Made by a program: the position numbers and the translations under genes. DNA of 64,000 nucleotides from Antechinus flavipes. Its lineage: Eukaryota. The stretch covers positions 104,284,001 to 104,348,000 of the forward strand of contig NC_067401.1 of assembly GCF_016432865.1 (NCBI RefSeq). The letters run 5' to 3'. This document shows, in pieces, positions 1,821 through 32,044 of the stretch (position 1 is the first letter of the stretch; every line of letters begins with the position of its first letter). The notes below the pieces were generated by a model. It ran no database searches. It was not told where the DNA came from and saw only the letters and a program-made list of their open reading frames with translations.

Positions 1821-1875
1821 ATGCTTTGGAAAACTTTCACTCCACTTCTCTTCCTTGTCTTGCTTCAGAACCAAG
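1821..1875 (+). CDS. CD244: CD244 exon 1, signal peptide MLWKTFTPLLFLVLLQNQ(G)
   Basis: ATG at 1821, hydrophobic leader, phase-1 donor CAAG|gtaag at 1876; joins in frame to the IgV exon; resembles human 2B4 leader MLGQVVTLILLLLLKVYQGK. Confidence 0.85.
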
Positions 1876-7731: not shown

Positions 7732-8067
7732 GAACACCAGGTTCTGATATGAGCATAAATGTCATCATGGGAGGTCGTATCCAGTTACAGCCAATTTGGA
7801 GTCAGGAGTATTCATCCAGTTCAAAATTCACTTGGTTTGTGACACTATCTTCAAGTAAGCAGACAATTAAAATACTGAGTTGGGAAACAGATAAAAAGAT
7901 GAAATGTGAAGCTAAGCAATTTAAAGACAGAGCTCATATCCAGCCTGACAACTTGACTTTATTCATTAACTCAGCTCAGAAGAATGACAGTGGTTGCTAC
8001 TACATGCAAATCACCAGTCAATCAGGACAAACTTTTAAGTCTACCTCATTCCAGGTTTCCGTGTTTG
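7732..8067 (+). CDS. CD244: CD244 exon 2, IgV domain (GTPGSDMSINV...IQLQP...FTW...ILSW...NLTLFINSAQKNDSGCYYMQITSQSGQTFKSTSFQVSVF)
   Basis: Acceptor ttctctcttag|ga, donor TTTG|gtgagt, phase 1-1, open frame; motifs match human 2B4 (LQLQP, ILKW, NLSLLIKAAQQQDSGLY, TSISG..TFQVFVF). Confidence 0.93.
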
Positions 8068-8159
8068 GTGAGTATCTATGATGATATTTTCCAGTCCCTT
8101 TATCAGCATTGCAGTACCTGTTTCACCTGGGCCAATTCTAACAGAATTTTTGCATCTAG

Positions 8160-8447
8160 ATCCTGTCCAAGCTCCACAGATCCAGGTGACTGGAAAATCA
8201 TGGAATAACACCTTATGCCATGTGAACCTGTCCTGCTTTGTTCCTGGGAACAGTAATTTGGTATACACTTGGTACAGAGGGAGAGAACGAATTAAAACCT
8301 CAGGAAAGCATGCCCATGTACAGCTCTATATCCAAGCCAACACAGAGAATTTTTATTCTTGTAATGCCAGCAACCCAGTTAGCTCAGCAAGCCATACCAC
8401 CAACCTTGCCCAGGCATGTGCTAGCCCAGATTATAGAACAAGCCCAG
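8160..8447 (+). CDS. CD244: CD244 exon 3, IgC2 domain (DPVQAPQI...CHVNLSC...YTWYRG...YSCNASNPVS...CASPDYRTSP); alternative start at 8145
   Basis: Acceptor catctag|at, donor CCAG|gtaaga, open frame, four Cys and WYRG/CNxSNPVS as in human 2B4 C2. Confidence 0.93.
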
Positions 8448-11400
8448 GTAAGAAGAATATATCTTTACTAAATATCACATCTTTTTTGATAGTGACAAAA
8501 TCCTTCTAATATTTTTTTGAAGTATGTGAGAGCCATGGTTCTTAGTTAGTTTGAAAGAATTCAAAGAGATTATCTTGTAGTCACAAAAGCATTGATTTTT
8601 GCTATATCTGATGGACTAAGCTCTAAGTGAGTCTAGTGATTAAAAAAGAGTTTGGGGAGAGCTTTATATGTTGGAAATTTGGGGCTTAGCTAGTAGGTCA
8701 ACAGCCTATAAGGTTACAAATTAAAAAGAAAGATAAGAAAGCATCTAGGAAGGAGATTTTCATTCAAGTAAGGATATAGGATGTCTTTTATCAAGGTACT
8801 ATAAACTTGACAGGATGGGGTTTCTGCAGGGGACAAATAAGGAGCAACAGATAAGATGTTTTAGTATTCCACATTCCTTAGCTCGATAAGTAGTTTTGAG
8901 TAGACCTTGGAGTCTGTTCTATAATCTCTCCCATTTTTGTCTTTGGGGGAAAGGAAATTCTGGGAAGAAAAGTTGAAGGTCTTGTTCTTCTACAGGAGCT
9001 GTGGCTGCTTCAAGTTGGAAGGCAGTGTAGAGCTGAATCTTCCTTACAGGGAAGGTCTCACTCAAAGGAGTGATTAGCTCAGAAGCAGGGTTAGAAGCTG
9101 GTTGAAGCAGCATCCAGTGGGTCTTGTAGTGTTGGCCACCATTCAAAGGTTAAATGACCAGAGCCTAAAGGAAATAAATCTAGCAAGTAGGGGATTATGG
9201 AATATGGCATTCTAAACAGTAAAAAAAAAGTTGGTTGGCAAAGAATACATGTGCCAAAGTGTTTAATAGTAGTTAGGCATTGGTTAGAGAGGAGGACTGG
9301 TTAAGGGTCTCCAGTGGGAGGCTTTTCTTTTGATAGGGCCTTCAGAAATATAAAGTGTTTCCCTCAGGGGCATAGATGGTGCCTGAAATCAGGCTTGTCC
9401 TAGTCTGATGAAAGAATTAGTTCTCCCCTCTTCCTCTCCCTCCTCCCCCAACTAACAGGAGCCCGCAGGATGTGGCAGAGAGAGCATACAGGGTGGGATA
9501 GAGAAGGCAGGAGAGTGCACTAAGAGATGGGCCTTCATTCTTGGGATATTATGATTGAAAGCACACAAAACATGGTTTAAGAAGTGTGGAAGAAAACAAT
9601 CGATGTGGACAAATTATGATTAGTTTTTTTTTTTTTTTCATCTTTCCTAAGAACTGAGGATGCAGGTGAAGGGGAGATAATATTTTAAGTGCCCCAGTCA
9701 CAATTTGTTTTATTTGTGATGTGAAGGTTGGGCCATAGTTACTCTGTAAAAAGCTTGGTAGCCAAAAAGAGGTATGATCTCTTTTAGTAGAGACTTTGCT
9801 GTTCTTATGCTACCCTGGCTCTTCCTCCTGAGTAATTTTCTCTGCAATGAAAGTAAAAATAGACTTAATTCAGGAAGTGTGACACCAGTTGGAGCAATAT
9901 AACCTCAGGGGAATGACATCATAACTTGTCTTTCTGACATACAGTAAGGATGGAATGGGACTGTAATCAAAATTCCATTGAACAAATAGCCTATGTAGCA
10001 TTGGGATGAACGTAGAGCCCAGCAAAGAGAAGCCACGATCCCCAGGAAGAAGATTGCTTCGGGGAGCTGAGATTATATTTAACTTAAAAGTAATCTTCAG
10101 AAAGGGGGGATACTACTAGGTCAGCTGAAGCATTCAACCTTTCCTTAACAGGGATCTTAGAATAGTCCTCTGTCAAAAAGCAGGATGTTGAGTTTAGCCC
10201 AAACCCCTATATGAGGCATATGTGAAAAGTCTGTCTGCCCATCTTTTTCAAGCAGGCAATCTGATATTCTTTCCCTAAACAGACAAGTATACCTTTTCTG
10301 AACAGGTTTTAGAAGAAGGGGGTTAACAGCATTTTCAGGGTTCACTTGGGCACAAAATATTAGATCTTGGACAGGTCTGTTAATCCTGCCTAATAGTGTT
10401 TTCTAGGCTCTGACCAGTGAAAATAGATTTCACGGGACTGGAGGGCAATCTCTGTAGCTTGGTGTAGACCTAAGAGAAATTTCTACTGGCTTGTCTGTGA
10501 GATTAGAAGCTACTTTGAGAGTATTTAAAAGCATCCAGAGGATGAAAGAGCATATCCCTTCTCTTTTGCAAGGACCTATTATAGGATAGAAGATAAGAAT
10601 TGGAGAACTTGGGGGAGTAAGATTTTAGCCAGTGTATAGGTTGGTCAGCAGACTCTTTTGTGGCTGCATCAACAAGCCAATTTCCTATGGCTTAGTCTGT
10701 GCATATCAAATTAGTTACATGTTTGTACCACAGGACACATAGTACAACAGATATTTTTCCATATTAGGAATAAACTTAAATAAAATTGAATTTCCCATTG
10801 ATATAACACAAAATATTTCATAGCTTTACATGCCTCTAAGAAAACTGATTGTACTGAAATTCTCTTCTCCAAACTACACTGAAGATGTTTCAACAAACAA
10901 GAACTGTTGACTCCCACAAATAGTTGTATTAATTGTTTTTACATCATTTTGAAACCTTTAAGCACCTTATTTCATATATATATATACATCTAGTAACAAA
11001 TAAATGACTAGGTCAAATAGTCATTTGTCGAATGACTACATATTTTCAGATAGAAAATAATCATTTATTTAATGAATATACATTTTTATCTTACATACTT
11101 ACAATGTGCTCGTGGCTTCTATTGACCAATTACTCTGAATATAGAAATTTTCTGTAAGAGAAAAAAGCAGGGACATGATCATTACAGAAATCATCCTTAA
11201 CTCTGTTTGACCAGGTATGAATCACAAATGATAATTACCATTGGTTAAGTGATAACCAAATATGCAGTTACAATTTTACTCTATAGCCAGATTCAAGAAT
11301 ATGTGGAGAACATTATTGTATAAAGCAATGCAATTGGGAAATAGAGTTAGTAGGAGCCTACTTTCAGGGTGGAATGGTGGGTTTACTGATTAAATGGTCC

Positions 11401-11984
11401 ATCATTCACACCAGAAATCAGACTCAAAAAAAAATAATAGTATATAATATCCCAAGACATTTTCTCTCAAATAGCGAAGTCCAACATTAGAGGCTTATCC
11501 TTCATCAGAGACTTCAGCTCTCAAGGATCACATATCTTAAATAATAAGTGTTATATTGGTAACAGTAAGAGATTGATAACAGAAAATTCACACTTAACTT
11601 AATTTTAAACAATATTACACAAATGACTTTGGTTTAAGATGCTCAATAACCAATTATCCAAGATGGGATGTAGGATCATAACAAATAGATGAAAAATTAT
11701 AAAATGTGTTCAATTATGAAAGCTTTAAAGTGACTTTTATGCAACCAATTAAATTAGCCTCATCAAAATTACAAAATTTATCAGGCCTTACCTACATTAG
11801 ACATTTTGCTTAATATCTTTCAATAGTTTTTCCTTTCTTTTTCTTTTAAAACTATCCTGATTTAAAAATCAAATGAGATAATATTTGCAAAAGCACTTAG
11901 CACAATGCCTGAGACATAGTAAATGGTTAGTGAATACTTGTTCCCTTCCCTCTTCCCAACGATTCCTTGCACTTCCTTGCACAG

Positions 11985-12011
11985 GACAGGTACATAATAA
12001 TTCAATGTAAG
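11985..12011 (+). CDS. CD244: Candidate shortened CD244 exon 6 (DRYIIIQCK)
   Basis: Polypyrimidine tract ending gcacag|, donor AAG|gtaaaa, phase 0-0, 110 bp before the next exon; YIIIQCK resembles human YSMIQSQ. Confidence 0.4.
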
Positions 12012-12121
12012 GTAAAAGGTTCTTATCTTTTAAGATAAGTTGGAGTATGGCAGAGATAATCTCTCCACATCATTGTCATCACCCTTTCTTTTATAATAGT
12101 TTAATTTTTTCCTTTCACTAG

Positions 12122-12187
12122 CTTTCTGCTTCCAATCTTGCTGGTCAAGATAAATCAGTGCATTCATCAGTACAATTCTCCAAGCAT
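12122..12187 (+). CDS. CD244: CD244 cytoplasmic exon 7 (LSASNLAGQDKSVHSSVQFSKH)
   Basis: Acceptor ttttttcctttcactag|, donor CAT|gtaaat, 66 nt, phase 0-0; aligns with human SSAPTSQEPAYTLYSLIQPSRK. Confidence 0.7.
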
Positions 12188-13255
12188 GTAAATCTCCTCC
12201 TTCAGGATGAGTATTTATATGTTTATATTTGTATGAACATGCATATCTATATCCATTAGTGGACATTCAGAATATATGTCTATGCTTGCCTTTTTGTGAT
12301 GTGAAAAGCTTGTGTGTTTAAGGGCCTGAATGTATGGGTGATGTGGAGAACTGCCTTTCACAGGTTTAGGGTTAAGGATGTAGCCTCTGGCCTCTGCTGT
12401 CTTAAGCATATCTGTTAAATAATTGGAACTCTAGTATGAAATACCTATAGCTTAGAATTGATGGGTAAACAAGAGATGGGTTTTCTTTTCTAGGAGAGTG
12501 AGGAATCTCAGAATACTGAGATCCAATTGGGAAAGAAAATACAAAGAGAGAGAGAGGGAGTATTTAGTCTGGCATAAGCAAGAAACCAGAAGAGATCTCT
12601 GTGAGTAGCCAGGGGGACTTAATGTAATTCAGTCTGTCTAGATAGGGAGTAGAATCTAGGGACAACTTGAAAAACAGAGTAGGCAAAGGTGATACCAAGA
12701 TCAGTATAAATGACCCAAACCCAAATCCTCAGAAAATCAAATGGAAAGACCTTGGACATGGATAGCTTTGGTCAATGCTGGACAAAGCTGGGTGGTCTCT
12801 ATGCTGCTAATTATCAGCTTCCAGACATCAGTGATTCAATTGTCCTGGATATATTAAAAAAGACTAGTCTAAATGTGTGTTGCTGTCAGAAGGAGATAAG
12901 GGATGGGAATCCATCTATGTTACTAAGACTGCAGCCAGCCACAACTAGGAGCCCCAGAATCTGGGGTTAAGTCAGTGACAGAAAGATACCCACTTCCTTT
13001 CTCACCATTATCTATAGTCAGATCTATGTCCAGAGACAAAATGCCATATAAGGTGTTCTTTGCTCTTTCACTAGAGGTCACAAAGCAGCATTGTTTATAT
13101 TTTGGGAAATAGATGCTAGGGGGGACTGACTAGGAGACCCTTGATGCTTCTCAAAATCTCCATCTGCACCCTCTGATTGGGTCCAAATTTAATGTGACCA
13201 TGACAATTGCATCTCTCAACTTTGAGCCGACTTCTCTCTTTCTCTGAATTTTCAG

Positions 13256-13315
13256 CAACCTTTTCCCAATCAAGTAAACTCCAACTCATCCCATCCAGTT
13301 ACTATCTATCAAGAG
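13256..13315 (+). CDS. CD244: CD244 cytoplasmic exon 8 (QPFPNQVNSNSSHPVTIYQE), carries the intact ITSM TIYQE|V
   Basis: Acceptor tctctgaattttcag|, donor GAG|gtaagt, 60 nt, phase 0-0; matches human NHSPSFNSTIYEV. Confidence 0.85.
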
Positions 13316-13383
13316 GTAAGTTACAAAATTGCCTTCTGAATATACTGGCTTCTCACATCCATCAAACCTCTTCTCAGGGATAA

Positions 13384-13960
13384 TGTTGAGGTTCAGAAGG
13401 AGACCCCAAGGGACACAGACTGATGTCACAGGGTATCGCAAAAGAATTTGCAGACTTGAATCCATCTCCAAGTCAAAGGGCAAAGTTTATTGTAATTGTA
13501 ATACCAATTTAAAGTGGGCTAAGTTCCAAAATGATTTAGCAAAGAACTAGAAAAAAAATAAAATTATAGGACAAAGTTAGAAAGACAAAAGCTGCATGTT
13601 ACTTATTTGCTAATTTTATGTCTTAAAGGTAGGATTGAGAGATGGTCTATTCACTGTTGTCTCAGGAACTTGGTTATCACTAACCAGCAGATTATCTATC
13701 AGTCAGCAGTATTGGTAGGACTATCCTAAAGCCAGAAGATTTTAGAATCACTGATAGACAGATGGTTAGAACAATAACACTCTTAAGGTCAGAGGACCTC
13801 AGGATCATTGCTATATCATCCCTAAAATCTAGAGAAAAAAATATATAACTATATTATTATATTTCTAAGGCCACAAGACTTTGTTATCATTGACAGACAG
13901 ATTGTTAGAATAATAATACTCTAGGGTCAGGGGACCCCAGGATTACTGCTAGAAATTCTA
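13384..13960 (-). mobile_element. ERV LTR (antisense) in CD244 intron 8; right boundary approximate
   Basis: Reverse complement ends ...ctgaacctcaaca and aligns with the LTR at 24655-24993 (aataaactt, tggagatgg). Confidence 0.7.
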
Positions 13961-15978
13961 CCTACCAGTATCATTTATCTTGAGAGAGTGCATAGTTCTC
14001 ATGTATCACTGATTAACTGTCTGTAGAACCTAGGAACCTGCCCACCATTTCAAAGAGAACAAAATTGAACCACACTAAATGTGTGGTTCATAAATAAATG
14101 CTTCCTTAGGGTCAGTCAGTTACCCGTTTTGGACTAAAGCACCTGAATCCATAGCAGCCTAATGGCTTAGTTCCAAAAGAGTAGAACTTCCTGGGCCACA
14201 GATGGGCAAGACCCTGTTCAAATGTGCCTAATAAACTAATTTTGCCTTTCTGGTTAATCATCCAACAGATTTCATAGGTATTTGTGTAATAGAGCAAATG
14301 GTTTGCCAGCGGATTAGAATATGATGCTAACAAGGTCTGGATCACTGATTTGTTGATAAACCCTGTTGATGGCTAAAGATTGCAAATCCTAACCATAGGC
14401 TATTTTCTTATAAAATCATACCATACATTGAAGGTAGGCTGGGCAAGACTGTCTGGCTCATGTAGGATATTCTAGGGTTCATTAGTACTACCAGGACTGC
14501 AAATCAAAAACTGTGTTATGGGATAACTAGATGGTACCCCCATGATACATGGGGAGCACCAGCCCTGGAGTCAGGAGAACCTGAGTTCAAATCTAGCCTC
14601 AGACACTTACTAGCCATGTGACTCTGGGCAAGTCACTTCACCTCAATTGCCTCACAAAAAACAACAAAATAATCTCCTCCCCATCAAAAAAAACAAACCA
14701 AAAAATCCTGCTCTAGAGCAGTATTTGGCAAATAAATGCTTTTGGTTTTTGGTTTTCTTGCTCCCTCACCCCTAATTCACTTTTTAATTATGAAACAACA
14801 TTTCCACTGGTTCTCCTTTCCCTTCTCTTATATAGAAGTAACTTTTGGAATTCTGCCTTGTCTATACCTCTAAACTGACTCAGATTGTTTGTTAGTTGAA
14901 TTGGGAAATTCTGCCCAAGAATGGAGTTGATACCAGAGTGTGATTATGAAGAAGCCCTTATCTCTCCAAAGTACAGAAGCAGCAAACAGCAGCTTCCTGG
15001 GTATGAGACACCCAAAGCTTCCTATTAGTCTTTGACTCTTTGTGACCCCATTTGGGATTTTCTTGGCAAAGATACTGCAGTGGTTTGCCATTTCTTTCTC
15101 CAGATCATTTTACAGTTGAGGAAACTGAGACAAACAGGGCTAAGTGACTTGCCTGAGGTCACACAGCTAGTAAGTGTCTGAGGCTGGATTTGAATTCTGG
15201 ACCTTTTGACTTCAAGCCCAGCACTTCATGCATCGTACTACTACCCCCATCCCAACATGTAGCACTTAGGAAATGCCAGACATTGTGTTCAACACAAGAT
15301 TTGCAAATATAAGCATAAATGTATCTAAATATGCATATACTTTTATCTATATATCTATATGTTTATATATGTAGAAGTCTATATTTCTACATATGCAAAA
15401 TGCCTCTATATCTCTGTATAGAGATAAATATAAATATATCTATTTATGATACCATATAATATAAATGATACCATAAAATATAAATATAAAATGTATATAT
15501 ACAGATTATATACACATATAAATATATAGACTATATATACACAAAAATATATATGTGCATATTTGTATTTTTTTTGTGTGTGTATTTAGATAAAGAAAAG
15601 GAAAGAATGAAAGAGACAGAGAGAGACAAAAGAGACTAGAGATGGAGAGTATGTCAGCCCTGCCCTCAAAGACCTTAAATTCTAATGGGAAAAACAACAC
15701 ATAAAGGGAATGGTGACTGGGAGGGATGGGGGAGTATTCTGGGGAGATAGAAAGTGTATCTGGGAAAGAGGGAGATTAAGAGGTCCAAAGATGAATTGAT
15801 TTACTTTCCCACGGACTGGAGTCTGGATACTGGAAGACTTGGTATGGAAATTCAAGTCTTATATCCTGTATGGTGTTTTGTATTACCAGTCAGGAGTGCA
15901 GGAGTGTGGTGGCTTGGATATGGTCAGATTGTAAGCCTAATGATAGGTACTGAATTAATGTCATTGCTTCTTCCTCAG

Positions 15979-16038
15979 GTCCAGAAATTCAATCGACTGT
16001 CTAGCAAGGAGTTGGAGATTTTCCAGCTCTATTCTTAA
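15979..16038 (+). CDS. CD244: CD244 last coding exon (VQKFNRLSSKELEIFQLYS*)
   Basis: Acceptor cttcttcctcag|gtc; matches human C-terminus RLSRKELENFDVYS; TAA ends at 16038. Confidence 0.9.
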   Translation, partial: VQKFNRLSSKELEIFQLYS

Positions 16039-16102
16039 TAATGACAGCTACTATCTGAAATGAACATATTGTTGAAGCATTTTGAGAGCGAAGAGATTTG
16101 GT

Positions 16103-16108
16103 AATAAA
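16103..16108 (+). terminator. Candidate polyadenylation signal for CD244 (another AATAAA at 16774)
   Basis: First AATAAA after the stop codon; usage unproven. Confidence 0.35.
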
Positions 16109-17329
16109 AACAGCTCATATTTTTATAGGTCTTGCAGGTTTACAAAGCTCTCTATTCACATCAATCACATGATGAAAAGAGTGCGAAGACTACACAAATA
16201 TTCCAATAGTTTACAACCTTATCAATGTGGACAGTCTCTCTAGTGATGTGGATCACCATTCATTTTTGCCTGCCTATTTTGTGTGACACTTTAATCTAAT
16301 ATCAGGGGGTCCATCTCACATGCTGGAAAACTTCCTGGATCTCACATCACAAGAAATGTGGAATACAAATGGAATACAAAGCTATCATCCTATTATCCCC
16401 TTGTCCACAGGCCCAACTCATGTTCCTTTTCAAACATAAACTTTGTTGTTGACATTTTTTGCTCTAATTCTTTTATAAAGTTTCTTATTCTATGCTGCAG
16501 GATGATCAAATCTACTGTGCACTTATCCACTGCTCTCTGGTCAATCATCTGTATTAATTCTTTAAGGGCTATAACATTCTATGACTTATTAGCCATGCAA
16601 TAACATTGGTGAGAGTGTTGCTTTTAAAAAGATGAAACTTTGTTTTTGTGAATCTTTACACATGAGGAAATGAACTCTTGAAGCCCTAAGTGACTTGCTC
16701 ATGGTCAAACAGCAAGTTACTGTCAGCGTTAAATCTTCCGGTTCTATATTTGTTTTTAGCTACGATTGTCTGGAATAAAAATACAATTTAATCACCTGTG
16801 TCTACTTTGGAGGCTGAAAAAGTTGACAATGCTGGATAATTCACCAAAGACCTTGATATAGTTCCCCTACCAGTGCATAGCTCTGGAGAGGATATCTGGA
16901 GTATATTTAAGGCTTATGTTACTTAAATTTTATAATTGTTCTAGAAGGTTATTGCTAATATTCATCATAAGAGACAAAGATGGCTGGCACTGTTTTCTGC
17001 CTCACAGGTAGAGATATCAAGGCATAGAGAAGCAATTTTACTGAAAGTCACATAACCAGTCACTAAATATAAAGATGTTCATTTTCTGAGATTCTAATCA
17101 ATTTATAAGTCTTTATTAAGCATTTAGTACATAGTAAGCATTGTGCTAAATGTTGGGTACAAACACAAAAGCAGTTTCTGACTTCAAGGAACTTACCTAT
17201 TAATGTGTGGGGAAAAACCACATAAATAAATAGGGATGTACATTTTTCCCATTGACATTTTTTAACTTTAATTCTTTTAAAAAGTTAGATAAGATAGACA
17301 TGGAATTATGTGTCTTTTTCCAGAAAAAT

Positions 17330-18375
17330 AGAGTTCTTAACATTTTTATGTCATGGACTCCTTTGGCAGGCTGGTGAAGCCATGAATGCTTTGTCATGTT
17401 TTTAAATATATAAAATATATTACAAAGGAAACCAATTGTGTTCAGATACAGTTACCAATATATTTTCTCAATAATATTTTATTTTTTCAAATACATGTAA
17501 AGATAGTTTCCAAGATTCATTTTTGTAAAATTTCGTGTCCAATTTTTTTCTCCTTCCCTCTCCTCCTGCCCCTCTTGATGCAGGTTGTGGTCCCTTTAAG
17601 AATTGATTTATTTCTGATTTCCAATATCAATCCAGGAAGCTAGGACCTTTTCATTCACCAATCCTGGTCAATAGTACCCCTTTGAATTCCAATAGAAGAT
17701 CTGGGCCTGTCCCAGCCCCCACTTGGATCTGAGCCAACTTGGGCTCTCCCAGCCCCCATTCTGATCTGCTCAGGTTTCCCAAGCAAACTCTAGCCCTCAC
17801 TGGAACCCAGGGAGGAGCCAACTTGGGATTCCACCCACAGGCCCCTTTAGCTAAATCTCTCCTTATAAAAGAATCAAACTGGAGCCCTCTCTTTGCAGAG
17901 GGTCAAAACACGCTACACCCTAAGGACCCTCTGTCCATTGGAATCCTGTTTCTGGCGCCCTCTTATCTCTACCTTCACCTATTTCCTTAACTATACTTAA
18001 ACCTTACTTCTAAACCCCATAATAAAACTCTTATCTAGCTTTTCAGGCCTATAAATTCCTTTATAGAGGACTCTCCTGCTGCTACTAGATCTCATTTAAC
18101 TCTGTATCTTTGCGCCAAATCTAAAGGGGTTGCAGGGGAGCTCTATTTGACTCCCTGTACCCCAAACCTGCCAATAGACCTCAATTAAACTCTAATTTCA
18201 TTTAGGTACCCCATATCTAGACCTTATCACCCTCTCCAAGACAGCAAGCAATATGATATAGGTTAAACATATGCAATTCTTTTCAATATATTTCCTTATG
18301 TTTCATGTTATCAACATTTTTTAATTAAAAAAAAAACAAAACTAAATTCACAGACCCCAGGTTGGGAACCCTGGA
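17330..18375. mobile_element. Old non-autonomous DNA transposon (hAT/MER-like) split by an L1 tail and an LTR
   Basis: Left part resembles 30190-30410; right end cacagaccccaggttgggaaccc follows the L1/LTR insertions. Confidence 0.5.
17576..18229 (+). mobile_element. Solo LTR, 654 bp, TG...CA, 6-bp TSD CCCTCT
   Basis: TSD at 17570-17575 and 18230-18235; TATAAAA at 17864, AATAAA at 18021; inserted in an L1 3' UTR. Confidence 0.85.
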
Positions 18376-18739
18376 GCCATTGGGGTGGGGCATTATAGGA
18401 AAGGTTAACTGCAGAAGACCGCATTTGAGTTGAACATTTGAAAGAAGCCAGTGTTAAGAGGCAGGATTTAGAACAGCAAAAATTCTACATCTGCAGTATT
18501 GTCATTGCAAGACTAAGAGGAAGGAGATAATGATGTAATAGGACTCGGTGGCTCCCTGATCTTTGTCGGGGTTGGGCCTGGATTAGAAAACCCTGAGTTT
18601 CCTAACAATCCCTCCTACCTTTTCACTTGGTCTCGGGAAACTCCCAAAATAATCCCCAATTTCAATTCATTTGGAGATTTCGATCTAGGCAGTAATCCCC
18701 TCCCGTTATTGACCTGGAAACTTGGCCTTACAAAGCTAA

Positions 18740-19420
18740 ATAAAATTGAACCCTATATCCCAAATCTTTCACTCTGCTTATAGATGAAAGGCAGGGCCAG
18801 GTCCTACGGGGCATAACTCAGTCTCTGGGACCTGACCCCAGATCTGTTGCCTACTTCTCTCTCTCTTTTTTGTTGAGGCAATTGGAGTTAAGTGACTTGC
18901 CCAGGGTCACACAGCCAGCAAGTGTTAAGTGTCTGAGACCAAATTTGAACTCAGGTCCTCCTGACTTCAGGGCTTGTACTCTATCCACTGGGGTACCTAG
19001 CTGCCCCACAGTTGCCTGTTTCTCAAAGAAAATGGACTTTGTTTCTTTAGAATGGCTCTCAAGCCCTAGAGCACTGGCTGCTACAGCCCTTCTAACTGAA
19101 GAAGCCTCACAACTCACTCTAGGGCACTAGAGCATTTTAGAAACCAAAGCGCATCGGTGGCTTGCTAGTGGGACACTTACTAGATATCAGGCTTTCCTAC
19201 TGAACACCCCTGTCACTCTGTTCCCTAACAACATTCAATCAGAGACACCAGTCATAATTGCAAGGAAACTTTAGATTCTGTCTATTCCAGCTGACCTGAC
19301 TTGAGGGGCATTCCTCTTAACAACCCAGATAGTGAATGGTTTATAAATGGGTCGAGTTTTCTTAAAAATGGGGAAAGAAAGGCAGGTTATTCTGTGGTGA
19401 TCCTCAATAGCATAAATACA
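18740..19420 (+). mobile_element. Gamma-like ERV pol fragment (RT connection-RNase H), interrupted by a SINE; second copy at 20624-21304
   Basis: KSFTLLIDERQG..GITQSLGPDPRSVAYFS|KKMD..RALAATALLTEEASQLTLG..PLNNPDSEWFINGSSF..KAGYSVV, like MLV-type pol. Confidence 0.85.
18860..19010 (-). mobile_element. Short tRNA/CORE SINE (WSINE1-like) in ERV pol; second copy at +1884
   Basis: ggggcagctagg...gagttcaaat...aattgcctca + A tail on the - strand; imperfect 14-bp TSD gttgcc(ta/tg)(c/t)ttctc. Confidence 0.85.
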
Positions 19421-21309
19421 CTGGGATCCCATAGTCATACTAAGGGATGGCTTAAATGGCTCTCCCAGCCCCCATTCTGATCTGCTCAGGTTTCCCAAGC
19501 AAACTCTAGCCCTCACTGGAACCCAGGGAGGAGCCAACTTGGGCTCTCCCAGCCCCCATTCTGATCTGCTCAGGTTTCCCAAGCAAACTCTAGCCCTCAC
19601 TGGAACCCAGGGAGGAGCCAACTTGGGCTCTCCCAGCCCCCATTCTGATCTGCTCAGGTTTCCCAAGCAAACTCTAGCCCTCACTGGAACCCAGGGAGGA
19701 GCCAACTTGGGATTCCACCCACAGGCCCCTTTAGCTAAATCTCTCCTTATAAAAGAATCAAACTGGAGCCCTCTCTTTGCAGAGGGTCAAAACACGCTAC
19801 ACCCTAAGGACCCTCTGTCCATTGGAATCCTGTTTCTGGCGCCCTCTTATCTCTACCTTCACCTATTTCCTTAACTATACTTAAACCTTACTTCTAAACC
19901 CCATAATAAAACTCTTATCTAGCTTTTCAGGCCTATAAATTCCTTTATAGAGGACTCTCCTGCTGCTACTAGATCTCATTTAACTCTGTATCTTTGCGCC
20001 AAATCTAAAGGGGTTGCAGGGGAGCTCTATTTGACTCCCTGTACCCCAAACCTGCCAATAGACCTCAATTAAACTCTAATTTCATTTAGGTACCCCATAT
20101 CTAGACCTTATCACCCTCTCCAAGACAGCAAGCAATATGATATAGGTTAAACATATGCAATTCTTTTCAATATATTTCCTTATGTTTCATGTTATCAACA
20201 TTTTTTAATTAAAAAAAAAACAAAACTAAATTCACAGACCCCAGGTTGGGAACCCTGGAGCCATTGGGGTGGGGCATTATAGGAAAGGTTAACTGCAGAA
20301 GACCGCATTTGAGTTGAACATTTGAAAGAAGCCAGTGTTAAGAGGCAGGATTTAGAACAGCAAAAATTCTACATCTGCAGTATTGTCATTGCAAGACTAA
20401 GAGGAAGGAGATAATGATGTAATAGGACTCGGTGGCTCCCTGATCTTTGTCGGGGTTGGGCCTGGATTAGAAAACCCTGAGTTTCCTAACAATCCCTCCT
20501 ACCTTTTCACTTGGTCTCGGGAAACTCCCAAAATAATCCCCAATTTCAATTCATTTGGAGATTTCGATCTAGGCAGTAATCCCCTCCCGTTATTGACCTG
20601 GAAACTTGGCCTTACAAAGCTAAATAAAATTGAACCCTATATCCCAAATCTTTCACTCTGCTTATAGATGAAAGGCAGGGCCAGGTCCTACGGGGCATAA
20701 CTCAGTCTCTGGGACCTGACCCCAGATCTGTTGCCTACTTCTCTCTCTCTTTTTTGTTGAGGCAATTGGAGTTAAGTGACTTGCCCAGGGTCACACAGCC
20801 AGCAAGTGTTAAGTGTCTGAGACCAAATTTGAACTCAGGTCCTCCTGACTTCAGGGCTTGTACTCTATCCACTGGGGTACCTAGCTGCCCCACAGTTGCC
20901 TGTTTCTCAAAGAAAATGGACTTTGTTTCTTTAGAATGGCTCTCAAGCCCTAGAGCACTGGCTGCTACAGCCCTTCTAACTGAAGAAGCCTCACAACTCA
21001 CTCTAGGGCACTAGAGCATTTTAGAAACCAAAGCGCATCGGTGGCTTGCTAGTGGGACACTTACTAGATATCAGGCTTTCCTACTGAACACCCCTGTCAC
21101 TCTGTTCCCTAACAACATTCAATCAGAGACACCAGTCATAATTGCAAGGAAACTTTAGATTCTGTCTATTCCAGCTGACCTGACTTGAGGGGCATTCCTC
21201 TTAACAACCCAGATAGTGAATGGTTTATAAATGGGTCGAGTTTTCTTAAAAATGGGGAAAGAAAGGCAGGTTATTCTGTGGTGATCCTCAATAGCATAAA
21301 TACACTGGG

Positions 21310-23879
21310 ATCCCATAGTCATACTAAGGGATGGCTTAAATGGCTCTCCCAGGGATTCCTGGGTCCCAATCAGAGGGATTTCCTTCCTCCTAGATTTCAG
21401 AGGGAATATGGGAGGGCTCTGAGAGAAGCACAAAAAGTTCATCCATAGGTCTGAGATGGAAAATTGGGTCCTCAACATCATTATTTAATCATACCCCAAC
21501 AAGGGAGCAGGACAGGAGGGAATAATAGGAAAGGAGTGTTTAAATAACAGCCCACCAAACTATCTGGGCAGAGGGAAGGTCTCAAAACAGTTCTTAAATT
21601 TCTCTTCAATCCCTGTTACTCTTTGGGGAGAGGGGCAGGTGAGACCAGAGGACCCATATCAAAAAAGTCATATCAAAGTTATCCTGGGTTCAACTACCAT
21701 GATGGAGTAAGGGGAAGTCTGATCAAGCCTCAAACCCCTGCCAGAGGGCAGTCTCTCTTCCAGTGCCCTCATGATTGCACTTGGGGCAAAGGCCTGGGAG
21801 TCTCCTACAAGGCCAGTTGCAAGCTTAGTGGCCCTGGCTGTGAAATCTAAAGCATAAACCCTCATGGTTTCCGGCTATGGCAGCAGCTAAAAATTGAACC
21901 TGTTCCTTGTTTCTTGCTCTGGCTTTTACTCTGTGTGTGTGGTCTTCTACTCTGCAGTTGTTTTGGTCCCTATTTTTAAACTTTAAAGTCTGTTTCTAAC
22001 AGCTGAGTTTGGGAAGTTTGAGGTCCCAAGGCTAACTTCTGCATCTTCATCTGAATATCTGGGGCAGATTGATTAATAAAAATGCATGCTGAGGACAGTG
22101 ATCCCCTCTGGAGAAATGGGGTCCAGATTAGTGTTATTTTTTTAGAGCCTCTACAAGGTGCCCCTGAAAGAGGGTAGGTTCTTCTCACTTTCTTGGGTAA
22201 CTTCCCTAAGTCTTTCATAATTAGAGCAAGTTAAAAGGTGCTCCCTTTTCCCTCTAAGGGTGGGCTACTGACTTAATGATCAGATTAATTAAATTCAAAA
22301 TCCAAAAGAATCAGTTATAGCCCTGAGTGATTTTATCTCTAATAGCAAATTCTACCAATCAAAGCTTAGGGCTAGATAGATTTTAAAAGTTTAGCAGGAT
22401 TTAAGCCCATAAGACAGTTTATTTAATATGTCTTAAATATATCCTAGTGTAGAGGATCATGTTGGCTTATAGGTTCTTAGTAAACATATTCCTTGTTTAG
22501 AAGCTATAAATCCTAAACAAGCTTATTTCTCAGGGCTGATGATACCTACCCTGATGATTTCAAAAAAAGCTGGCAAGCTTACAAATTAAGGAGTGTTAAC
22601 AGAGACCCCAGGGAAGAGGTTAAGCTTGATAAGGTGCCTAGCCCGATTATTTTTAGTGCTTTTGTGGGCTGTGCTGTTTGATACTTCCCCCACTCTGTGA
22701 AGGGGGAAAGGAGTTCACACCTTATATTTAGAGGTAGAGTGGTCAGTGATGATCACTATCCCACACTACCTCAAAGTAACTGTGGAACCCCAACTTTTCA
22801 TCATTTTTCACAGTCACATTAAAAAAACCCCATAAAGTTATTAAATATGGAACAATTATATCCAATAAAGCAGTTAACATTCATATAGCATGTTTTAAAG
22901 CAATTATATCCAACAAAGCAGTTAATATTCATATACCATGTTTTATGTTAAGCACTTCACAACAAAATTTATTATTTCTCTTGACAAATTAGAAAATTAG
23001 GCAGAGATAAAATAGTTTGCCATAAATTTCATAGCTAATATATATCCATAATTGAGCTACAGAATGATAGTCTTACCAAATGCAGAGGCTGACTGGCTTT
23101 CTGGGTGCTGCCAGAGGGTACCTGAAGTCTTCTCAGGCAGTTGCTAGACAGAATCTGCTGAAAGCTGGCATGATTGGTGCCAGGGCTCAGGGAATGTTGA
23201 CCATGGAGCCTGACCCTCAACTTCATCCCTATTCCTCTAAGCTAAATTGGGGTTATTTTGGGCAAGGCTGTGTCAAGTCCCCATGGTTTTGCATTCTTTG
23301 CAGGTGTGGCAGAATTTGAATTTCCATATAGTTCTGAGATGAGAAGAGTGAGCAAGCAGATTGATCTTGTTAGCAATCCCCACAACTGAGATGTTTTAGG
23401 ATTTTTTTTTTGCAATTTTAAAATGACTAGTTGCCAAAGTTCGTGATCATTGCTTTCAGAATTTTGAGAATTTGCTAAAGATGTTTGGCTCTCACAACCT
23501 TTGAGAATAACAAAATCTAGGCTTATAGAACAAACATGACACAGGGATTCTACAAGAGATGAAGACACACACAGAATAACATGAAAGAATACTGTCCCAT
23601 CTTTGCCAAAAAGCCATAAAATGTTGCCCAAAACTATCCTATAGCATTTCCCTCTCCTCTGACATCCCAGAGGAACTTTGCTGAAGACTGCAAGAATTTC
23701 CCAGTCTGGGCATCCCAAGTCCAGGAAAATTTGTTGAGTATGGAGTTCATGATGATCCAGACAAGCCTTCTCCCAGTGGCTTGAGGTGTCTCACTATAGG
23801 ATTGTGGGAGAAAAAAATGAGAGGCTTATCTTGACAAAGAGGAAATCAAGCTAGGGGAGGCCCTATATGGGCCACCAAA
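21310..23879 (-). mobile_element. ERV internal remnant: PBS, long leader, gag (zinc knuckle), protease, start of RT
   Basis: Knuckle CPKC..GHWKRDCP at about 21745-21788; protease EPRITL..D.G and CPAPLLG.D; RT start WDPGIPGRA; all interrupted. Confidence 0.8.
23860..23877 (-). promoter_or_regulatory. Retroviral primer-binding site, tRNA-Ile type
   Basis: TGGTGGCCCATATAGGGC, 2 nt after the LTR terminal CA; compare tRNA-Ile(AAT) complement TGGTGGCCCGTACGGGGA; the internal mismatches fall at CpG positions. Confidence 0.7.
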
Positions 23880-24259: not shown

Positions 24260-24993
24260 TTGTCTGACCCCTCCCCAAGTCTTCCTCTGGGTGGAGTTCT
24301 TGGTTCCTGTCCTTAGTAATCCCCATACTAATTTCACCTTTAATCTTTTTTTTTTTTTTTTTTTGCTCATATTTGGCCACTGCATTTCTAATCTACTTGT
24401 GATTGTTTCTTCCAGGCTCCAAGTCATGAAATTCCAACTACTTGGTCTACCTGAGATCACCTGAGAACTGATTCTGACACTCAGCAGACTCTGCTGATGC
24501 CCCTACAAGTCACTTGTCTCTTCTCTCAGTCTGGACCCCACTGGGCCGGACCAGCTCTATGCTCCTTGTCCCCCTGAAGCAGCTCCAGAGGATGAGACCT
24601 CTGTCCCTTCGTTCCAGATGAATTTGGATTTGTACTGCTTGAGGTGGGAAGGATGGGGTAATGACCCTGAGGCCACCAGGCCATGGCAGTGCCCAGTTTT
24701 ACAAACAGTGCTGGCTGTTAGATAACAATCTGTTGGTCAGTAATAACAAAGTCTCTGAGATAATAATGAGGTGCATACCAAACCACTCTTCAATTCCTCC
24801 TCTAAGACTATTCCTCAGTTCCACTTCTAAGCTATAAAATAAGCTTATTTTTTGGAATTTAGCTTGCTTCAACTGGTGTTACAATTATAATAAACTTTTT
24901 CCCTTGACCTGGAGATGGTTTCAAGCCGGCAAATCCTTTTGAGGCACCAATTTGCAACACCCAACCTTTTGGAGTCCCTTCTGAACCTCAACA
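24260..24993 (+). mobile_element. ERV 3' end: env-tail remnant, polypurine tract and 3' LTR (about 24655-24993)
   Basis: SSRLQVMKFQLL resembles a gamma-type TM tail; gaggtgggaagga PPT; LTR with TATA, AATAAA and terminal CA. Confidence 0.65.
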
Positions 24994-25676
24994 AATTCAT
25001 AGAGGTTAAGTGTTTTGTTCAGGCACTCATGCATTGAGAGACTGGATTTGAAGTCAGGAAATTGCACTCAATCCAGCAAACTTTTCATCACACAGAGAAA
25101 GGGCTTCTTAGAGGGTGAAATGGAAAGAAATAGGTATCGTGACTAGGAAAGGGCTAGGTCTGCTGTAGAAGCTCATGGGTGGGGCATTTGGCTGATTTTG
25201 TCAACAGATACTGGGGCTGAGCGTGCAGCAGGGAGAAAAGACCATTCTACCTTGGAGAAAGACATGATATGATGGCTATGGGAGCCTGGGTTGAACACGT
25301 GAGCTAGATAAGGGAAGAGGCAAGTCATGTTCCTTGGACTAGAAGGGGGTGGAAGATAGGAAACAATGTTCCTCTTCTTCTCTTAAAGAGGAATCATGAC
25401 CCCTGGCAGGTCAACATCAAGATCCAGTTCTGTTTGTCCTGTTTTGGTTCCTACTTTGCTTCTCTGTTTCCTAAGTTTCTTCCCCTTTACAAATTCTTTT
25501 TCTGTTTCAAGTCTCCAGACAAGTCATTTCTCTTCTGTGAAGCATTCTCTGGTCTCTTGGTAATGAGGAAAGAGCACTAAAGCACGGAAAAAAAAAAAAG
25601 ATTTAAATTGATTCAACCCCAGTCTCCTTTATTGGCTTACACTGTAATTGGACAAGTCACTGCCCTTTTCAAATCC

Positions 25677-28600
25677 AAAATGAAAGAGTTGGATTAGATG
25701 AATTTCAACGTGTTTTACAGCTCTGACAAACCCATAATTATTTCTCTTATCTTTTCTTTCTTTTGATCTAAAATATTATTGCCACCATATTTTAATTCTT
25801 CATGATGGCCTGCTATGAACTGGCCTACCAACTTCATGTGTCCAAGGCCTAATAAGTGTAAATTCTTCTTGATCAGGAATAGTCTCTTATCCTTGCTTTA
25901 TTTGTATCTTGTATCTCAGAGTCAGAGCCAGAGGGAAAGTGGTTAATGCAATAAGCAGAAGATAAAAACCTAGAGAAACTTTCATTACATGTCTGAAGTC
26001 AGAGAGAGGGGAGGTAAAATTGGGGAAATAGAAAATGAGAAGTCCAAGGAGGGTTTAGGAAAATGGGAGCAGAATGAACAGCTGGTTTGAAGTCAGGTTG
26101 AAGGTTATGAAATAATTAAAATGTTCTTCCTTATCTCTCTCTCTCTCTTTTTAAATTTTATAATAACTTTTTATTGACAGAATCCATGCCAGGGTAATTT
26201 TTTTTACATTATCCCTTGCACTTGCTTCTGTTCCGATTTTTCCCCTCCTTCCCTTCACCCCCTCCCCTAGATGGCAAGCAGTCCTATATACGTTATGCAA
26301 TATGTTGCAGTATATCCTAGATACAATATATGTTTGCAGAACCAAATAGTTCTCTTGTTGCACAGGGAGAATTGGATTCAGAAGGTATAAATAACTTGGG
26401 AAGAAAAATAAAAATACAAATAGTTTACATTCATTTCCCAGTGTTCTTTCTTTGGGTGTAGCTGCTTCTGTCCATCATTTATCAATTGAAACTTATATCT
26501 CTATTTAGGATTATTTATGTGGATCATTCTTTGAAGGGAAGCTGGCATAAAAACAGCATTGAAATTTGATAGAGAATGAAATTTATTTTATACTTAATAC
26601 TTGATAGATGTCTCTCTTAAACCTATTGTACAGTCATTATGGTAGAACTGAGTAAGATTTGTTATTAATGTCCAAATTAGTCAGCTAATTGATTTGCATA
26701 TCAACAGTGTTTATTGGCTAATATGCTGTATCATTTTGATCAATTAGCATCCCAAAGGGTTAGAATTAGGATCAGAATTAGATTTAGTCATAGATCTTTT
26801 ATAGATAGAGGTTTAACTCTTAGCTGGGGTGTCCTAGAGCCAGCTTCAATGAGTTTGTGAGAACTCAATTCTTCAGTTTTATTATGAACACTTACATCTC
26901 AAGCATCAACCATCACTACAAATAAGGGCTTGATTTTTGTTTTGTTGATTGTCTAGACTTAAGAAAATATTAATAATGTAGATTAAACATGTTTTTTGTT
27001 GGATTGAATTTTTTATTTATTTGTTTCACAGTGTTGTTAAACATATACTAGGACACCCCTGGTTCTTAGCCTCTCTTTCTAATTTTTATTAGAATAACAG
27101 ATAATTCTGTCAATTTCTGCCTTAGTAATACCAGATATAAAAGAGGACTGTCCCTCTAGAAAGCAGTGGTCACCATGGGGCAGTTTTGAAAAGTCCAAAG
27201 TCTGCAGTTTGTAAGGTCTGTGAAGTGAATGATTTATTCATCAGTTAAAATGAAAGAGTTGGATTAGATGAATTTCAACGTGTTTTACAGCTCTGACAAA
27301 CCCATAATTATTTCTCTTATCTTTTCTTTCTTTTGATCTAAAATATTATTGCCACCATATTTTAATTCTTCATGATGGCCTGCTATGAACTGGCCTACCA
27401 ACTTCATGTGTCCAAGGCCTAATAAGTGTAAATTCTTCTTGATCAGGAATAGTCTCTTATCCTTGCTTTATTTGTATCTTGTATCTCAGAGTCAGAGCCA
27501 GAGGGAAAGTGGTTAATGCAATAAGCAGAAGATAAAAACCTAGAGAAACTTTCATTACATGTCTGAAGTCAGAGAGAGGGGAGGTAAAATTGGGGAAATA
27601 GAAAATGAGAAGTCCAAGGAGGGTTTAGGAAAATGGGAGCAGAATGAACAGCTGGTTTGAAGTCAGGTTGAAGGTTATGAAATAATTAAAATGTTCTTCC
27701 TTATCTCTCTCTCTCTCTTTTTAAATTTTATAATAACTTTTTATTGACAGAATCCATGCCAGGGTAATTTTTTTTACATTATCCCTTGCACTTGCTTCTG
27801 TTCCGATTTTTCCCCTCCTTCCCTTCACCCCCTCCCCTAGATGGCAAGCAGTCCTATATACGTTATGCAATATGTTGCAGTATATCCTAGATACAATATA
27901 TGTTTGCAGAACCAAATAGTTCTCTTGTTGCACAGGGAGAATTGGATTCAGAAGGTATAAATAACTTGGGAAGAAAAATAAAAATACAAATAGTTTACAT
28001 TCATTTCCCAGTGTTCTTTCTTTGGGTGTAGCTGCTTCTGTCCATCATTTATCAATTGAAACTTATATCTCTATTTAGGATTATTTATGTGGATCATTCT
28101 TTGAAGGGAAGCTGGCATAAAAACAGCATTGAAATTTGATAGAGAATGAAATTTATTTTATACTTAATACTTGATAGATGTCTCTCTTAAACCTATTGTA
28201 CAGTCATTATGGTAGAACTGAGTAAGATTTGTTATTAATGTCCAAATTAGTCAGCTAATTGATTTGCATATCAACAGTGTTTATTGGCTAATATGCTGTA
28301 TCATTTTGATCAATTAGCATCCCAAAGGGTTAGAATTAGGATCAGAATTAGATTTAGTCATAGATCTTTTATAGATAGAGGTTTAACTCTTAGCTGGGGT
28401 GTCCTAGAGCCAGCTTCAATGAGTTTGTGAGAACTCAATTCTTCAGTTTTATTATGAACACTTACATCTCAAGCATCAACCATCACTACAAATAAGGGCT
28501 TGATTTTTGTTTTGTTGATTGTCTAGACTTAAGAAAATATTAATAATGTAGATTAAACATGTTTTTTGTTGGATTGAATTTTTTATTTATTTGTTTCACA

Positions 28601-28824
28601 GTGTTGTTAAACATATACTAGGACACCCCTGGTTCTTAGCCTCTCTTTCTAATTTTTATTAGAATAACAGATAATTCTGTCAATTTCTGCCTTAGTAATA
28701 CCAGATATAAAAGAGGACTGTCCCTCTAGAAAGCAGTGGTCACCATGGGGCAGTTTTGAAAAGTCCAAAGTCTGCAGTTTGTAAGGTCTGTGAAGTGAAT
28801 GATTTATTCATCAGTTAAAATGAA
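25677..28824. repeat. Tandem duplication, period 1570 bp
   Basis: ORFs at 26151 and 27721 are identical; junction aaaatgaa(a/g)gagtt. Confidence 0.95.
26148..26492 (-). mobile_element. L1 3'-UTR fragment (second copy at +1570)
   Basis: Same L1 tail family as 6121 and 49793. Confidence 0.8.
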
Positions 28825-31800: not shown

Positions 31801-31909
31801 CCTAGGTTCATGTGAGTGACCGTGTAGGAGTATAGGCAAATCATTTGACTATATATTTGTTACAAAGAATTTGTTTTTCTTTTCTTTTTATTTTTCAATG
31901 GGGCAAGAG

Positions 31910-32044
31910 NNNNNNNNNNNNNNNNNNNNNNNNNNNNNNNNNNNNNNNNNNNNNNNNNNNNNNNNNNNNNNNNNNNNNNNNNNNNNNNNNNNNNNNNNNN
32001 NNNNNNNNNNNNNNNNNNNNNNNNNNNNNNNNNNNNNNNNNNNN
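31910..32044. other. Assembly gap (135 N); others at 56110-56250 (141 N) and 57211-57458 (248 N)
   Basis: N runs. Confidence 1.

Follow-up and report, generated by a model that had tools for sequence, protein, structure and literature searches.

Putative loss of the transmembrane and first two ITSM exons from the CD244 (2B4) gene in the Antechinus flavipes reference genome

The CD244 locus and its retained exons

NK cells and CD8 T cells carry 2B4 as a conserved co-receptor. The window analysed here, a stretch of 64,000 nucleotides identical in sequence to the Antechinus flavipes assembly GCA_016432865.2 (chromosome record CM028220.1), contains a gene that, judged by its sequence, is the single CD244 (2B4) ortholog of this species. 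The RefSeq protein XP_051852534.1 ("2B4-like") maps onto the window, and the reading frame of the V exon, when used as a query of representative proteins, returned the opossum ortholog. Furthermore, the CD244 loci of the devil (Sarcophilus harrisii) and the dunnart (Sminthopsis crassicaudata) are colinear with the window over a span that opens 1.8 kb ahead of the start codon and runs past the stop. No other Ig-type exons were found in the rest of the 64-kb window, no second 2B4 protein of A. flavipes came up in protein database searches, and no Antechinus transcript-derived proteins were found with XP_051852534.1 as the query. The following exons were located:

1821..1875, plus strand: exon 1, start codon and signal peptide; 55 nt, ending in phase 1; tblastn with opossum, dunnart and devil 2B4
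7732..8067, plus strand: exon 2, Ig V domain; 336 nt, phase 1/1; splice sites read
8160..8447, plus strand: exon 3, Ig C2 domain; 288 nt, phase 1/1; orthologous donor CAG/GTAAGA at 8448
12122..12187, plus strand: remnant of the third-ITSM exon; 66 nt; matched to the koala ITSM3 exon by tblastn (E=0.003)
13256..13315, plus strand: fourth-ITSM exon; 60 nt, native phase 0/0, ending TIYQE/V; tblastn E=7e-07 against the dunnart protein; splice sites read
15979..16038, plus strand: last coding exon; 19 codons plus stop; tblastn E=1.6e-07; amino acids identical to dunnart

The leader shares 74% identity with that of opossum and differs at one residue from the leaders of dunnart and devil, and an exon fit with exon 1 reproduces XP_051852534.1. 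The V domain matched PF11465 (Receptor_2B4) at E=1.1e-14, with 54.9 bits against a cut-off of 21, and its best PDB matches were the V domains of CD48 and 2B4. This match and the colinearity with the devil and dunnart loci uphold the naming of the gene as CD244 in the original prediction. The C2 domain matched PF13895 (Ig_2, E=3e-07), its cysteines line up with the cysteines of eight further marsupial 2B4 proteins, and its exon boundaries agree with the dunnart exon at 10434-10721. Synonymous and nonsynonymous changes in the ectodomain numbered 6/14 in Antechinus versus 8/15 in devil, with no sign of relaxed constraint in a comparison that has little power on so short a branch. Between 47 and 76% of the V+C2 words were present in runs X19-X22, at most a hint that an mRNA is made.

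Tblastn and splice-site reading confirmed what had been proposed for the leader, V, C2 and last cytoplasmic exons, namely that they are open and bounded by canonical splice sites. The ITSM4 and last exons carry no Antechinus-specific change in 120 nt, where the intron rate of 2.8% would predict 3.4. In the relic ITSM3 exon, His stands for Tyr in all three dasyurids. The Antechinus copy is still open and keeps its AG acceptor, in dunnart the exon contains an in-frame stop and its acceptor reads AA, and the dunnart and devil proteins leave this exon unused.

The absent exons and the junction

The transmembrane (TM), ITSM1 and ITSM2 parts were present in all 2B4 proteins retrieved from eleven other marsupial species, which include opossum, Gracilinanus, koala, wombat, brushtail possum, sugar glider, tammar wallaby, Dromiciops, dunnart and devil. 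In the A. flavipes window, by contrast, tblastn of all 64 kb with the TM-to-ITSM2 segments of four 2B4 proteins (dunnart, devil, koala and opossum) gave no match above chance level. The features that define the interval, and the positions of the corresponding exons in the dunnart (locus sequence L002) and the devil (locus sequence L005), are as follows:

8448..11862, plus strand: retained 5' part of the ancestral C2-TM intron; colinear with dunnart 10722-13319 and with devil up to 10865, at 88-92% identity
11863..11872, plus strand: putative deletion junction, 10-nt microhomology TAAAAATCAA; present at both parental sites in devil, less exactly in dunnart
Dunnart exon map: TM 18855-18968; ITSM1 19880-19935; ITSM2 22451-22516
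Devil exon map: TM 16164-16274; ITSM1 about 17171-17239; ITSM2 22467-22541

A single colinear break was seen at the same place against both outgroup genomes. The left block ends at 11872 in both, and the right block restarts at devil 24865 and dunnart 24821. In the dunnart alignment, window 11536-11872 corresponds to dunnart 12978-13319 and window 11926 onward to dunnart 24874 onward; in the devil alignment, window 10617-11872 corresponds to devil 9549-10865 and window 11926-18971 to devil 24918-32086. Window 11887-11925, just right of the junction, was masked in these comparisons. The absent block measures 14.0 kb on the devil sequence or 11.5 kb on the dunnart sequence and holds exactly the TM, ITSM1 and ITSM2 exons, no part of which was found elsewhere in the 64 kb. 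At the junction, unique sequence is joined to a SINE tail, and the sequence on either side differs from the outgroups to an ordinary degree. Repeat-mediated recombination or collapse was rejected, given that the parental breakpoints share only 10 nt.

These results, with a hydrophobicity scan, bear directly on the original prediction, which had described 8448-11984 as a gap-free stretch without a recognisable TM or ITSM1 exon. The stretch and the junction are indeed gap-free (the only N runs of the window are at 31910, 56110 and 57211), and both exons are missing from it. The list was nevertheless incomplete, as the ITSM2 exon is gone too. The suggestion that an exon had merely diverged too far to be seen was refuted by the devil and dunnart alignments, which show that the whole block containing the exons is absent. 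The end coordinate of that stretch had come from a presumed 27-nt exon at 11985, which is not an orthologous exon. This open AG..GT segment (11985..12011, plus strand; DRYIIIQCK), which has the look of a weak ITSM, aligns to dunnart intron (about 24933-24959), which has GG in place of the acceptor AG. It is distinct from the ITSM2 exon (dunnart 22451-22516) and plays no part in the RefSeq model. A hydrophobic open reading frame at 21851-21976, 5.8 kb downstream of the stop, was also set aside; all three frames are hydrophobic there, and it was taken as T-rich non-coding sequence.

By tblastn, synteny and hydrophobicity, this gene copy thus has neither the membrane anchor nor the basic stop-transfer feature of 2B4. 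A multi-ITSM tail (TxYxxV/I) cannot be read in frame either, with only the ITSM4 exon left, out of frame from the ancestral donor. The arrangement could be explained by a single deletion of about 11.5-14 kb, joined at the 10-nt microhomology, which would have removed ancestral exons 4-6. Exon 4 would have supplied the transmembrane segment and basic stop-transfer, exon 5 (56 nt) the first ITSM together with a shift of reading phase from 1 to 0, and exon 6 the second ITSM.

Predicted products and competing explanations

The lost exons sum to 236 nt, so splicing of C2 to any remaining ancestral exon is out of frame. Joining the C2 donor (8447, phase 1) to the surviving ancestral acceptors yields TM-less predicted products of 234-254 aa, each consisting of the signal peptide, V, C2 and 8-28 unrelated residues, with no anchor and no ITSM. 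The read-through tail after 8447 was considered as a TM or GPI signal and rejected as too polar (Kyte-Doolittle mean 1.18). From these products we infer that the allele could not signal as 2B4. The C2-to-ITSM4 splice, expected from the shortened ancestral exon order, would put the stop in the last exon, and the mRNA would therefore escape nonsense-mediated decay. Such an mRNA would give a 254-aa secreted ectodomain, a possible CD48 decoy. An mRNA that includes the relic exon at 12122-12187 would be degraded, its stop lying 94 nt upstream of the last junction. The locus combines the marks of a secreted decoy in its sequence (a signal peptide and an intact V/C2 ectodomain, with no anchor in any predicted product) with those of a unitary pseudogene (three deleted exons, a frameshift and no other A. 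flavipes 2B4 protein found).

The RefSeq model XP_051852534.1 regains frame only through three non-orthologous splice sites, and it too lacks a TM. Its best 17-residue Kyte-Doolittle mean is 1.54, versus 3.0 in relatives, and its junction segment was rejected as a TM or GPI signal at that value as too polar. It is a forced model built via cryptic splice sites, and its middle part is unfit for comparative work. Should RNA-seq back the cryptic sites of this in-frame Gnomon model, the product would differ from our prediction but would still be TM-less.

A recent, real microhomology-mediated deletion that left a null or secreted-decoy allele is probably the explanation of the locus. The original prediction had named a natural deletion giving a secreted or decoy 2B4 and early pseudogenisation as separate possibilities; both fit the breakpoint, the three lost exons and the frameshift. 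The tail exons, now useless, are unchanged, which points to a young deletion. On this sequence evidence, the lack of any Antechinus-specific tail change leaves a young deletion, a polymorphic one or an assembly error, and undecayed tail exons are equally expected from an artefact or from a private heterozygous allele. A collapsed assembly, also raised originally, is made less likely by the junction. It would mean that CD244 is intact in the animal, that wtdbg2 skipped about 12-14 kb and that the junction at 11863-11872 is unreal. The fully intact ectodomain and the unaltered tail exons are what a working gene would have, and the assembly was made from noisy CLR reads (PacBio at 100x; PMC9290055). 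Moreover, only about 6 kb downstream, a stretch of 1,738 bp is perfectly duplicated in direct orientation, the two copies being bridged by three perfect 84-bp repeats; devil has one copy, and a local assembly error is possible there. However, the microhomology at the junction is short and imperfect, no long near-identical repeats flank the block to cause a collapse, the flanks diverge ordinarily from the outgroups, and the gap-free contig comes from an assembly with 100x coverage and a contig N50 of 51.8 Mb. We therefore regard an artefact as unlikely.

Within the favoured reading of a real deletion, there is an appreciable, though minority, chance that it is heterozygous or of low frequency in the reference male and that the species keeps a membrane 2B4. 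The apparent youth of the deletion, the intact relic and tail splice sites, and the habit of haploid consensus assemblers of keeping one allele of a structural variant are all in line with this. Nothing in the window argues against it; protein searches gave no alternative haplotig protein with a TM, although haplotigs may have been purged. That the deletion is instead fixed in Antechinus, so that a signalling NK/T-cell co-receptor would have been turned into a germline-encoded secreted CD48 decoy of about 254 aa, appears quite improbable on the sequence; if true, the 2B4-CD48 axis would act only via a soluble blocker. A new or highly diverged TM exon in the retained intron, giving a short-tailed membrane protein, is very improbable. 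The sole phase-1 hydrophobic AG..GT candidate there (9793..9852, plus strand) is open in phase 1/1 and contains 17 fairly hydrophobic residues, but it is at chance level, with 0.4 such segments per frame expected from shuffles. Its best 17-residue Kyte-Doolittle mean is 2.05 versus about 3.0 in real dasyurid TMs, no basic stop-transfer residues follow it, and its acceptor is a poor one, the third AG after the pyrimidine tract. Furthermore, the dunnart homolog is ordinary intron with frame-breaking 5-nt and 1-nt indels, the region is absent from devil, and synteny puts the true TM exon inside the missing block.

Significance and relation to known forms of 2B4

Antechinus is a genus known for stress-driven immune collapse, and it is already used to model immune senescence and male die-off. 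No papers linking Antechinus and CD244 were found in a literature search. A real deletion that is common in Antechinus would amount to a naturally occurring knockout, or soluble version, of the 2B4 checkpoint; if it is an assembly error, the finding flags a reference defect at an immune locus. The activating signal of 2B4 is carried by the first ITSM (PMC12506779), and a germline-encoded TM-less 2B4 is not described in that review.

The closest relatives of the Antechinus gene are S. harrisii XP_012403443.1 and the S. crassicaudata 2B4-like protein, encoded at the orthologous locus in colinear DNA of 88-92% identity. The leader, V, C2, ITSM4 and last exons are shared with identical splice phases, whereas Antechinus is without exons 4-6 and its tail exons are unreadable in frame from the ancestral C2 donor. 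A V-C2 ectodomain with no membrane anchor is also found in the predicted isoforms X1 and X2 of the sugar glider (Petaurus breviceps). In that species, however, the 114-nt TM exon is optionally skipped in frame, all ITSMs are kept and a full-length isoform X3 coexists, while the loss in Antechinus is genomic, obligatory and frame-shifting. The mouse (long, short) and human (2B4-A, 2B4-B) splice forms are likewise natural 2B4 variants that alter signalling capacity (PMC12506779), but all known forms retain the transmembrane segment. Among soluble decoys of the CD48-2B4 axis, a parallel may be seen in A43, a herpesvirus soluble CD48 homolog (PMC13575745): if secreted, the Antechinus product could likewise act as a soluble Ig-domain partner that blocks the CD48-2B4 contact. 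Unlike A43, which is a viral ligand mimic, the putative Antechinus decoy would be the ectodomain of the host's own receptor.

Gene identity and intact exons

The plus-strand gene was identified by sequence homology as the CD244 (2B4) ortholog. Its V exon matched Pfam Receptor_2B4 (E=1.1e-14), the C2 exon that follows matched Pfam Ig_2, and the nearest solved structures to the V exon were the CD48 and 2B4 V domains. XP_051852534.1 (P0111, 'natural killer cell receptor 2B4-like', 326 aa) mapped exactly onto the window, and, in a string comparison of the unmasked window, all 18,038 bases shared with the Antechinus flavipes sequence GCA_016432865.2, CM028220.1 (L003, offset 180) were identical. 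Direct sequence reading and protein-to-exon fitting, by which the exons listed below were defined, bore out the original prediction that the leader, V, C2 and last cytoplasmic exons are intact.

Intact CD244 exons in the Antechinus window
1821-1875, + strand, leader exon with start codon and signal peptide (sequence reading, protein fit)
7732-8067, + strand, V exon, phase 1/1 (sequence reading, protein fit)
8160-8447, + strand, C2 exon, phase 1/1, preceding intron 92 nt, donor CAG/GTAAGA
13256-13315, + strand, ITSM4 exon, phase 0/0, TIYQE/V at its end
15979-16038, + strand, last coding exon, 19 codons and stop

A tandem acceptor was observed 15 nt upstream of the C2 exon (8141-8159), with AG at 8143-8144 and 8158-8159. 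The 15-nt insert between the two sites is open and similar in Antechinus (EFLHL), devil (EFFLL) and dunnart (EFLLL).

The missing exon block

The transmembrane (TM) and first-ITSM exons had been reported as unrecognisable after C2, and their absence from the stretch 8448-11984, which holds zero N, was confirmed. No convincing TM exon was found there by hydrophobicity scans and phase-aware AG..GT enumeration, and tblastn with the segment from TM to ITSM2 of dunnart, devil, koala and opossum 2B4 gave chance matches only (E>1) over the whole window on both strands. The second-ITSM (ITSM2) exon was absent as well, which extends the earlier observation. It is highly improbable that a TM exon lies hidden in the locus. 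A phase-1 hydrophobic candidate at 9793-9852 was rejected as chance level; it has a poor acceptor, corresponds to dunnart intron with indels and is absent in devil. Likewise, a 27-nt stretch (11985-12011) considered as an exon corresponds to dunnart intron and has no AG there.

In the alignment, the TM, basic stop-transfer stretch, ITSM1 and ITSM2 were present in the 2B4 of all eleven other marsupial species retrieved. Genomic sequence for comparison came from two outgroups, the dunnart (Sminthopsis crassicaudata, L002) and Tasmanian devil (L004 and L005).

CD244 exons in the dunnart (L002), and the third-ITSM exon in all three species
L002 5001-5055, leader exon
L002 10006-10341, V exon
L002 10434-10721, C2 exon
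L002 18855-18968, TM exon, 114 nt, phase 1/1
L002 19880-19935, ITSM1 exon, 56 nt, phase 1 to 0
L002 22451-22516, ITSM2 exon, 66 nt
L002 26108-26170, ITSM4 exon
L002 28403-28462, last exon
Window 12122-12187, L002 25065-25130 and L005 25110-25175, third-ITSM relic exon

Compared by blastn with dunnart and devil, the window matched in long colinear blocks that were 88-92% identical, interrupted by a single break common to both. The left block ended at window 11872 (dunnart 13319, devil 10865) and the right block restarted at 11926 (dunnart 24874, devil 24918); the window copy used in alignments and searches had 11887-11925, which begins 15 nt to the right of the breakpoint, masked as N. In dunnart coordinates the missing block spans 11,501 bp, in devil coordinates 13,999 bp; the exons it carries are exactly TM, ITSM1 and ITSM2, and their sequence was found nowhere else within the window. 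This synteny refutes the suggestion that an exon had diverged too far to be seen, and attributes the missing exons to a single deletion block spanning three exons.

Comparison of the outgroup flanks with the window sequence and the masked alignments placed a 10-nt microhomology common to both parental sites at window 11863-11872. This microhomology is flanked by unique intron on the left and a SINE-like element tail on the right, a pattern characteristic of microhomology-mediated end joining or of slippage during replication, not of long-repeat recombination or collapse.

Other features of this intron were also observed. An N run in the dunnart assembly (L002 12944-12977), opposite window 10677-11535, is clear of the breakpoint; N runs in L002 and in the window were kept as they stand. 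About 1.7 kb of the post-C2 intron (8876-10616) is present in dunnart and absent in devil, a gap that appears to be an independent devil-lineage deletion in the same intron. The sequence at 8518-8932, close behind the C2 exon, has a second copy, 76-78% identical, in dunnart (L002 15231-15638) and devil (L005 12625-13021). This copy falls inside the block lost from Antechinus and suggests that part of the intron was duplicated long ago in dasyurids.

Predicted products and age of the loss

In dasyurids the third-ITSM exon is a relic. Its motif carries Tyr to His in Antechinus, dunnart and devil (3/3); the dunnart exon has an in-frame stop and AA replacing the AG acceptor, and in Antechinus the frame is open and the AG acceptor kept.

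The lost exons sum to 236 nt, which is not divisible by three. Products were computed locally with ancestral splice sites, starting at the C2 donor 8447.

Predicted products from donor 8447
To relic exon 12122: 236 aa, stop 94 nt upstream of the last junction, therefore a likely nonsense-mediated decay target
To ITSM4 exon 13256: 254 aa, stop within the last exon
To last exon: 234 aa
Read-through of the donor: 246 aa

Every product lacks both TM and ITSM and comprises the signal peptide, V and C2 followed by a brief run of unrelated residues. In the RefSeq model the frame is preserved solely by features that have no orthologous splice site in dunnart: a weak donor at 8491 (ATA/GTGACA), an extended exon (12122-12230) and, at 13227, an acceptor. 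The junction segment of that model is not TM-like either (Kyte-Doolittle mean 1.54 versus about 3.0).

Antechinus-specific changes were polarised with devil as sister and dunnart as outgroup. Intron substitutions amounted to 112/4007 (2.8%), and the 120 nt of the orphaned ITSM4 and last exons carried 0 changes, where 3.4 would be expected (Poisson P about 0.03). Synonymous/nonsynonymous counts in the ectodomain were 6/14 in Antechinus and 8/15 in devil, with no extra relaxation visible in this comparison of low power. Given the unchanged tail exons, the deletion is recent on the Antechinus branch, or polymorphic, or not real.

Origin of the deletion and known 2B4 forms

The most likely reading, and a probable one, is that the deletion is real and young and leaves this allele either null or coding for a secreted ectodomain. 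An assembly artefact is unlikely: the junction type counts against repeat collapse, and yet local errors may exist, as ~6 kb downstream there is a duplication of 1,738 bp accompanied by an 84-bp x3 array, both of them perfect. The assembly was built from 100x PacBio CLR reads with wtdbg2 and Pilon polishing (contig N50 51.8 Mb; PMC9290055).

The direct duplication (17731-19468 and 19615-21352) is 100% identical and begins 1.7 kb beyond the stop codon of CD244, its copies are bridged by the tandem array (19458-19711), and devil has one copy of the sequence; it is either a very recent event or a false assembly duplication. As for sequencing runs, 47-76% of V and C2 words were present in runs X19-X22. 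The many small runs X1-X18 of organism A, from eight studies, resembled one another in the share of these words that each contained (0.18-0.24). The latter probably derive from a relative, perhaps devil, sharing the V end into C2; the protein over this part is identical between Antechinus and devil.

No paper on CD244 in Antechinus was found in the literature search. Interest in the locus would rise if the deletion were fixed and the secreted form expressed. In mouse (long and short forms) and human (forms A and B), every known 2B4 isoform retains the TM (PMC12506779), whereas the predicted Antechinus products have none. In the sugar glider (Petaurus breviceps), RefSeq predicts isoforms (P0107 and P0109) in which the TM exon is skipped in frame while the full form coexists, and soluble 2B4 may therefore arise in marsupials through alternative splicing.
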